From assembly GCA_023515725.1 (NCBI GenBank), contig JALDTO010000158.1, positions 425,268 to 489,267 of the forward strand: a stretch of DNA of 64,000 nucleotides, read 5' to 3'. Origin of the DNA: Amoeboaphelidium protococcarum X5 (Eukaryota; Fungi; Aphelidiomycota). Both the position numbers and the translations under genes were made by a program. Shown here piece after piece: positions 26,246 through 28,087 of this stretch (position 1 is the stretch's first letter; every line of letters starts with the position of its first letter). The notes beneath the pieces were generated by a model. It was not told where the DNA came from and searched no databases. It saw nothing but the letters and a program-made list of their open reading frames with translations.

Positions 26246-26623
26246 ATAAGAGAAACTATTTTGTTTTATAATGGCCTGCACTAAGTGGCGCAGTATTAAT
26301 AGCAAACTCACACATAGTTTACAAGTCATTTTGTTGAAGTCGAGATTGATTGAACATCGATCTCATTTTACTTTAAAAGTATTGTAATGTATTAATATAT
26401 CAGAGTTTTAAATTGATTAATCAATACAGAATTGAGCTTTTCGATGCGAATAAATGTAATAAGTCTTACTATCAGGGGCTATTCCTATTTTGTTGCGTGA
26501 CTCGGATTATTGATCAAGGGATATAATTTGACTGCTGCGCCATTTTCCATAGATTCCCTAGTTCTCGATATAGCTTATTTGTGAACTATATCCTCTGATA
26601 TAAGTATATCTGCATATATAGAA

Positions 26624-27796
26624 ATGAATTTTAGATCCAATTGGTATTCCGTGTGTACTAGCGATAATCTTCCGGCCGGGTAAGTGGCTGGCATGAGATT
26701 GCTAGGTGATCCTATCTGTCTATTCCGAACGGCTAAGAGTGGACGCGTCGGCTGCCTGGTTGATCGTGATGAGTCTCGTGGTGAACAATTGAGTCTAGGA
26801 CGCGTCGAAGGAGAGCACCTTCAGTCCAAATATCAAGGTTGGGAGTATGATCTGACCGGACGCGTCGTCAAGATTCCTTAGGTCACTGACGAGGAATGCA
26901 AGACGATGAACGTGTCTGTCTACGCGTATCCTTGCTGGGAACAAGGCGGTCGCATTTGGGTGTGGCCTGGCGAAAAGTCAGAGGCTAATGTGAACCTGAT
27001 TCCTGATGTGTCTGCAATGGTGCCACCGAGTGGATGGAGTCTATTGTACAACCAACATTGGGACGCCAATATCTGTCCGCTCCTGACTGTCGAGTCTAAC
27101 ACCAACGTGTCTCATGGTCCATTTGTTCATCATGGCACCGTGTCTAATCGTAAGTAGGCTTAAGTGCTACATCCGGTGAACTCTGAATTTGATCTTGGTC
27201 CAGTGCTGGGTCCTAAATTTGCCAAGTAGACTGGTTACAAGTCCCGCACAACTTTGGCCGATGGCACTACTTTTGAGCAGGTTCTCTTGCCTTCTTTCCA
27301 GGTGGCTCTGACTTAGGAGCAGAATGGGAGTCCAATGGTACGTGTTATGATGCAGATCGTTCCAGTGAGTAAGAACCACACTCGCTTCATCACTTGTACC
27401 TATGTCTAGATTGGCAGTCCGCTGTATTACATCAGCAAGATTCCTGGCATGAAGTTTATCATGAAATGGGTAGCTGACAAGGGATTCTTCCAAGATTATG
27501 AAGTTATTCGCTCCCAGATGCTGAACAGCCGCAAAGGTGTTCACTCGCTCAAGAATCCCGATGCATGCGACTACCTGACTGTGGTTGTAAAGTAGATGGT
27601 GGCTGATGGGATGGCGATGAAGTATAACTGCATCAAGCAGGGCGATTATGAGCTGAAGTTGAATAGTTTCTGGTTCAGCGGATGGAAGTGCACCACCAAG
27701 ACTGACGCGTTGAATGACGGCCTAGTTGTAGATCCTTCCGAGGATGGCGACTACAAGCCGACTCCGCTGCCTGGAATCAACAGTAGTCTATACTGA
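26624..27796 (+). CDS. Rieske non-heme iron oxygenase-like protein (CAO/PAO/VanA-like architecture) lacking Rieske ligands
   Basis: NWYSV, LLGDPICLFR, LSLGRVEG, GWEYD..G....IP, YPCWEQGGRIWVWPG and ESNTNVSHGPFVH. Confidence 0.85.
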
Positions 27797-28087
27797 TTAA
27801 CACAGTTTCTAGAAAAAATCATGAAGTAACACGAATTTTAATAATTGAAATATAATAAATGTTTTCCATCTATTTAATTATTTCTTTACTTGAATGGATT
27901 ATTATATAAACGCGGTAAAGCTTTCAAGCCGTTTCGTTCTGTCGGCATGTGATCCTTAAGAGCTTCCATCCTTTCCATTTAACGGAATTGCTGAGTTAAC
28001 GCCGCTTATTATTCTAGTTGAATTACACTTGATTTATTATAATATTAGTCTGAAATATTTATATTATATTGATTTTCTATGTACATT

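Follow-up and report, generated by a model that had tools for sequence, protein, structure and literature searches.

A Rieske oxygenase homolog that has lost its cluster ligands and kept its iron-site triad in the aphelid Amoeboaphelidium protococcarum

Amoeboaphelidium protococcarum is an aphelid parasitoid of green algae. In the assembly analysed here (23.6 Mb in 346 contigs, ~41% GC) most genes are present as two diverged copies on separate contigs, and the literature gives 24.7 Mb and 40.5% GC for the species, with a gene count double that of A. occidentale (PMC10608142). The window, by which we mean the whole 64-kb stretch of contig C158 under analysis, carries on its forward strand a coding sequence at 26624..27796, which opens with the ATG at 26624 and reads on in one frame to the first TGA, at 27794-27796, giving 390 codons plus the stop. 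Eight TAA or TAG codons lie within this frame, and TAA and TAG are read as glutamine. Two observations establish this reading: with TGA as the only stop, the longest open reading frames in the 64-kb window reach 1377, 1275 and 1219 aa, against a maximum of 254 aa under the standard code, with no other single-stop scheme giving comparable lengths in the window; and the window gene and its second genomic copy on contig C98 show silent glutamine interchanges of TAG with CAG and of TAA with TAG. The standard-code reading, which yields fragments of 65-90 aa only, was dropped. Introns are ruled out by the continuous frame and by transcript contigs that are colinear with the genome, so that the gene is a single intronless open reading frame.

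Those contigs come from X5 and X4, two public runs of one 2021 study whose run type is not on record, and they define an unspliced, polyadenylated transcript with a minimum extent of 26567..27859 (+). The X5 contig spans 26567-27820 and the X4 contig 26702-27859, with no joints reported. The X4 contig ends in 18 non-templated A residues right after an AATAAA signal, and the genome sequence immediately ahead of the tail is AATAAATG. Since a poly(A) tail and gene-bounded contigs mark the material as RNA, the window gene is transcribed. By contig depth, a crude measure, the window-gene contigs are ~7-12 times deeper than those of neighbouring genes (718 and 1327, against ~30-160 for the flanking genes). 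The contigs differ from the window at three sites, all of them synonymous. The dual RNA-seq paper on A. protococcarum does not mention the gene, and neither exhaustive nor word-index protein searches returned the window protein or a near-identical copy from a collection in which an intact A. protococcarum paralog, described below, is present; the gene may thus lack a public annotation, even though its transcript appears abundant.

The defining feature of Rieske oxygenases is an electron relay in which a [2Fe-2S] cluster supplies a mononuclear iron. The N-terminal part of the window protein is a Rieske-like domain without cluster ligands (26624..26959, +; codons 1-112). A previous sequence-only reading had proposed that DRDESR and SKYQGW stand where the family has DRCxHR and CxYHGW, and both motifs are indeed found, at 26762..26779 (+) and 26825..26842 (+), respectively. 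In alignment to homologs, the cluster-ligand columns are occupied by Asp49, Ser51, Ser68 and Gln71, so that all four ligands are replaced (Cys49Asp, His51Ser, Cys68Ser and His71Gln). The same reading held that both iron-site histidines and the FQD carboxylate survive and that the bridging Asp has become Asn, which the alignment upholds. The iron-site motif ESNTNVSHGPFVHH (27092..27133, +) retains His164 and His169 and places Asn161 in the bridging-Asp column (E-x3-D-x2-H), where every other aligned homolog bar the C98 copy has Asp. Further downstream, FQDYE (27488..27502, +) contributes Asp291 to the near-invariant carboxylate column of the family. A 2-His-1-carboxylate site, as assigned by alignment to the family ligand columns, is therefore present, and the internal electron path has lost both of its ends, the four cluster ligands and the bridging Asp, as had been claimed. 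The Asn that adjoins the iron motif in the family (EN..D) is Ser in the window protein.

The alignment comprises 129 sequences of at least 300 aa each. Of these, 95 show the pattern C-H-C-H / E-N-D-H-H / D and 11 more differ solely by an Asp for the first Glu, so that 106 of the 129 carry the full ligand set if Asp is allowed at that leading position. The combination of D-S-S-Q with a bridging Asn is confined, in this alignment, to the window gene and the C98 copy. Separately, the intact PAO-type family includes a subclade of chytrid proteins (P0076, P0079, P0080, P0081, P0084 and P0116, from Spizellomycetales and Rhizophlyctis) that reads C-H-C-D, with Asp for the fourth Rieske ligand; some of its members have altered iron motifs as well. 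Here zoosporic fungi depart from the canonical cluster site a second time, and independently.

Profile matches agree with this picture of the two domains. The Rieske profile PF00355 scores 27.5 bits on a 65-aa stop-free piece (26684-26881; cut-off 20.3) and 43.8 bits for the window gene in a six-frame genome search. Pfam applied to seven stop-free pieces (E up to 1) returned Rieske only and no PaO (PF08417), VanA_C or KshA_C, and a six-frame genome search for the PaO domain matched the intact paralog pair only, leaving the window gene without a match. The window protein resembles the PAO/TIC55/PTC52/CAO-type proteins (PF08417) in its two-domain layout, its H-x4-H spacing and its FQD carboxylate, but differs from them in that four ligands and the bridge are replaced, there is no anchor and no PaO score, and it belongs to a clade of three lineages.

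Rieske-domain genes fall into four kinds in this genome, all of them paired: the window gene and its C98 copy, with cluster ligands replaced (C158 and C98); an intact, 468-aa oxygenase of PAO type whose C-terminal tail is hydrophobic (C207 and C206), which accounts for the genome's only PaO-domain matches; the mitochondrial Rieske protein (C200 and C233); and a 201-aa Rieske-only protein (C213 and C179; L005:1474-2079 on the minus strand and L008:1114-1722 on the plus strand). The intact paralog, identical at 463 of 468 residues to the NCBI entry 'hypothetical protein MP228_008452 [Amoeboaphelidium protococcarum]', aligns with the window protein end to end at 29% identity and at the aligned positions reads CAHR...CKYHGW, ENLLDPAHIPFTH and FQDYE. 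The window protein is not extended at its N-terminus and stops ~60 residues before the paralog's hydrophobic tail; lacking both an extension and a C-terminal membrane tail, it is probably soluble. The N-terminal half of the 201-aa protein is rich in Ser and Gln, its C-terminal part being a minimal Rieske domain with the ligand motifs CPH...CPKH, and this is the only gene with a cluster and no iron site apart from the mitochondrial Rieske protein; as such it is a conceivable trans donor. An oxygenase paralog complementary to the window protein, with a cluster and without an iron site, had been suggested as something to look for, and six-frame searches with the Rieske and PaO profiles found none among the oxygenase-type genes of the genome.

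The C98 copy (L004) carries the same ligand substitutions as the window gene. Over 1170 aligned bases the two differ at 73 positions and by zero indels, with 57.5 synonymous and 15.5 non-synonymous changes, a dS of 0.26 and a dN/dS of 0.067 (Nei-Gojobori); the comparison value for the intact paralog pair is 0.050. These values place the window gene under purifying selection. Split by region, the ratio is lowest in the Rieske-like domain (0.037), higher in the catalytic domain (0.056) and highest over the C-terminal 90 codons (0.154); constraint is thus strongest on the emptied Rieske-like lobe. In the C98 copy, a Phe next to the carboxylate has become Ser, and a TAA (L004:2656-2658) stands where the window gene has its TGA stop. 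With this TAA read as glutamine, the C98 frame continues for 109 further codons through AT-rich sequence, with no in-frame TGA ahead of the position that matches the window poly(A) site. TGA is kept in the C98 region at 25 of the 28 other window reading-frame ends that matched, the three exceptions being listed as an alignment gap, a probably spurious antisense reading frame and the window gene itself. This copy may encode a longer C-terminus, yield a non-stop mRNA, be in early decay or terminate at TAA in a context-dependent way, and the Phe-to-Ser change beside the carboxylate together with the lost TGA stop suggests that constraint on it may be weakening.

To place the protein among its relatives, an exhaustive HMMER search of 1.84 billion representative proteins was run with a 90-aa stop-free piece as query. 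Of its 39 matches only two are close, both metagenomic: P0001 (395 aa, 36% identical to the window protein along its entire length) and P0006 (371 aa, 30% identical). Neither a word-index search with P0001 nor a profile search with P0001 and P0006 returned further members of the clade, the profile score falling from 714 to 106 bits at the next match. The cluster ligands read C-H-T-H in P0001 and C-H-S-H in P0006, and both proteins retain the bridging Asp and the H, H, D triad. Conservation of the iron-site residues in related proteins had been named as a point on which the sequence-only reading could fall; the triad is kept in both clade relatives. P0006 is recognised by the PaO profile (29.1 bits; cut-off 27) and P0001 has no score, and against NCBIfam the two stayed far below threshold, reaching no more than 74-98 bits with SdmA, whose cut-off is 600.

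In a tree from a quick IQ-TREE search (LG+C20; unrooted, with long branches), the grouping (P0006,(P0001,(window, C98 copy))) receives an SH-aLRT of 100 and sits on a long branch. This clade falls inside a 52-row PaO-domain group (SH-aLRT 98) and outside a supported clade (99) of intact aphelid and chytrid proteins, and the tree thereby indicates that the window protein descends from within the PAO/TIC55/CAO-type subfamily. Loss of the electron-transfer residues had been read as coordinated, and here the relatives tell otherwise: since P0001 and P0006 keep the bridging Asp and three of the four ligands, the loss was stepwise rather than one coordinated event, with the third ligand, a Cys, going first. 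In the simplest history suggested by these sequences, that ligand would have been lost in the clade ancestor and the remaining three, with the bridge, later, on the branch to Amoeboaphelidium but ahead of the split between the two genomic copies. Because the two relatives retain three ligands and the bridging Asp, the clade ancestor may have kept some cluster-based chemistry.

P0001 and P0006 both lie on short metagenome contigs. The P0001 contig (L015, from a JGI metagenome) is eukaryote-like and uses the standard code, and a gene adjoining P0001 is 34-46% identical to its Amoeboaphelidium counterpart; judged by its contig, the source of P0001 is not a close relative of Amoeboaphelidium. Its flanks hold what we take to be a fragment resembling a Helitron/PIF1-type helicase and a FRA10AC1-like gene.

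The evidence on fold comes from an AlphaFold model of P0001, the 36%-identical relative, rather than of the window protein itself (pLDDT 84.9, pTM 0.84). Over both of its domains the model matches two-domain alpha-3 Rieske oxygenases, among them GxtA/SxtT, NdmA and dicamba monooxygenase (DdmC), with Foldseek E-values of ~1e-20 to 1e-16 and TM scores of 0.6-0.75 over ~350 columns. The comparison holds for P0001, not for the window protein: these are its nearest solved relatives, by predicted fold and also by sequence, where SxtT is the best match at E = 1.5e-19. Each of them retains an intact Rieske cluster and the bridging Asp and is served by a reductase of its own.

We interpret the window gene as a working gene whose soluble product would derive from a PAO/VanA-type (alpha-3) Rieske oxygenase. 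With the canonical residues for the [2Fe-2S] cluster gone, the cluster would no longer be held, and the Rieske-like lobe would have been kept for structural reasons, probably to mediate contacts within an oligomer. The catalytic lobe, with His164, His169 and Asp291, most likely still binds a metal, as the conservation of these residues in three lineages suggests. The reductase-to-Rieske-to-iron relay cannot operate, because the protein's own cluster and the bridging carboxylate are both lost. His71Gln and Asp161Asn are both amide swaps of residues that normally face each other across the subunit boundary, and these two side chains might therefore still hydrogen-bond, a suggestion that draws on a single evolutionary event. 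We envision that the substrate would be a hydrophobic small molecule, handled by metal chemistry without an external electron relay, for which Lewis-acid catalysis, an oxidation paid for by the substrate and a peroxide-driven oxidation are candidates. On balance, we consider it somewhat probable that this maintained, soluble, cluster-free protein has a relay-independent, metal-dependent activity.

Electrons might instead be supplied in trans, either in mixed trimers with the intact, tail-anchored paralog or by a separate Rieske protein, and we regard this as unlikely, though it has precedents. NdmC, of the NdmCDE caffeine N7-demethylase, is a non-heme iron oxygenase of the family that works although it carries no Rieske cluster itself (PMC4408171), and in Micromonas pusilla CAO the Rieske and mononuclear-iron functions reside on two related chains (PMC9615114, citing Kunugi et al. 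2013). The genome at hand would also offer donors, in the intact pair on C206 and C207 with all its ligands and in the Rieske-only 201-aa protein on C213 and C179, and the finding that constraint is highest in the Rieske-like lobe would fit a conserved subunit interface. The precedents, however, differ from the present case: NdmC has lost its entire Rieske domain, which is found on the reductase NdmD, whereas the window protein keeps the domain, constrained but emptied, and has no evident NdmD-like partner; and unlike the Micromonas system, there is here no complementary paralog and the bridging carboxylate is lost. It is this Asp, now Asn, that elsewhere in the family connects the cluster of a neighbouring subunit with the iron. 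Moreover, the two paralogs share only 29% identity and lie in separate deep clades, the intact one is membrane-anchored and the window protein has no anchor, and the small Rieske protein looks general, being widely conserved and unlinked to the window gene. The earlier reading against a simple split heterodimer, argued from loss of the Asp, is supported by the lack of a complementary oxygenase paralog and qualified by the two proteins that could in principle donate in trans.

About as doubtful, in our estimation, is a non-catalytic role in which the protein would bind, sequester or regulate and the His-His-Asp triad would serve stability or the holding of a ligand. The catalytic lobe of the family is a hydrophobic ligand pocket, an apparently abundant transcript would suit a stoichiometric binder, and a carotenoid-oxygenase homolog without most of its iron histidines lies 6.4 kb upstream. 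NirD-type domains show that a Rieske fold without cluster-binding residues can take on a non-redox role. PSB33/TEF5, which acts in photosystem II assembly, is likewise a Rieske fold without cluster and iron residues in a non-redox role (PMC12164590). Both are stand-alone Rieske-like domains without a catalytic lobe, whereas the window protein has the lobe, and in contrast to PSB33/TEF5 it keeps the iron residues; that these ligands and their flanking motif outlasted the loss of five relay residues would be unexpected in a pure binder. Finally, we see hardly any chance that the gene is simply decaying, its in-frame stops and lost ligands being damage. Such a reading could draw on the eight TAA/TAG codons that would be stops in the standard code, on the undetected Pfam PaO domain and on the C98 copy's lack of a TGA stop, but the in-frame stops are all TAA or TAG in a window with TGA-only reading frames of up to 1377 aa, the copies have accumulated zero frameshifts or indels at a dN/dS close to that of the intact pair, and the polyadenylated mRNA is colinear with the genome. 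Selection between the copies and the polyadenylated transcript led us to reject a pseudogene.

The upstream homolog belongs to the carotenoid-cleavage-oxygenase (RPE65) family and lies at 18347-20206 (+). It had been described as a dead carotenoid oxygenase some 6 kb away; its position stands, at 6.4 kb, and its loss of histidines is apparent from a rough alignment by eye, in which Arg, Arg and Lys/Ser stand at the positions of three motif histidines of the C182 copy (L011), so that, relative to this intact copy, the homolog appears to have lost three or more of its four iron histidines. The homolog has a conserved second copy on C98 with its TGA stop kept. There are two distinct carotenoid-oxygenase loci (haploid count), and the probability that one would lie within 7 kb of the window gene by chance is, as a post hoc estimate, a few in a thousand. 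Between and around the two lie RRP40, a C2CD5-like gene and an inositol-phosphatase-like gene, none of them related to the pair. Reductase-independent chemistry, tetrapyrrole binding and a pigment toolkit shared with this homolog, as put forward in the sequence-only reading, would be candidate roles.

The intact PAO-type family is also found in soil and pollen chytrids and in Endogonales, and its presence in chytrids that do not live on algae means that PAO-type ancestry alone does not imply chlorophyll. Chlorophyll is detoxified to cyclopheophorbide enols by a pathway whose genetic basis is unknown and which, among opisthokonts, has been seen only in diatom-parasitic chytrids (PMC6775998). 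That a chlorophyll-catabolite scaffold has here been turned into a redox-independent metal enzyme, or into a sequestering protein, for phototoxic algal pigments is a coherent but speculative proposal to which we give little credence; one candidate role would be the conversion of chlorophyll derivatives to non-fluorescent cyclopheophorbide enols, possibly together with the His-poor carotenoid-oxygenase homolog.

With all the residues that hold the cluster lost, the window protein must work without the internal relay of its family. A literature search returned no description of a comparable full-length, cluster-emptied protein and nothing that joins 'Rieske' and 'aphelid'; in the nearest precedents, either the Rieske domain is deleted (NdmC) or the catalytic lobe is absent (PSB33/TEF5). 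Under strong selection, transcribed and with its iron triad kept, the protein would constitute a natural experiment on what the catalytic lobe can do alone, be it peroxide-driven, substrate-driven or non-redox chemistry, or ligand binding. The genes for pigment handling are unknown in phagotrophic eukaryotes; here, in a parasitoid that digests green algae, PAO-type ancestry makes the protein a concrete candidate for a part in that process.
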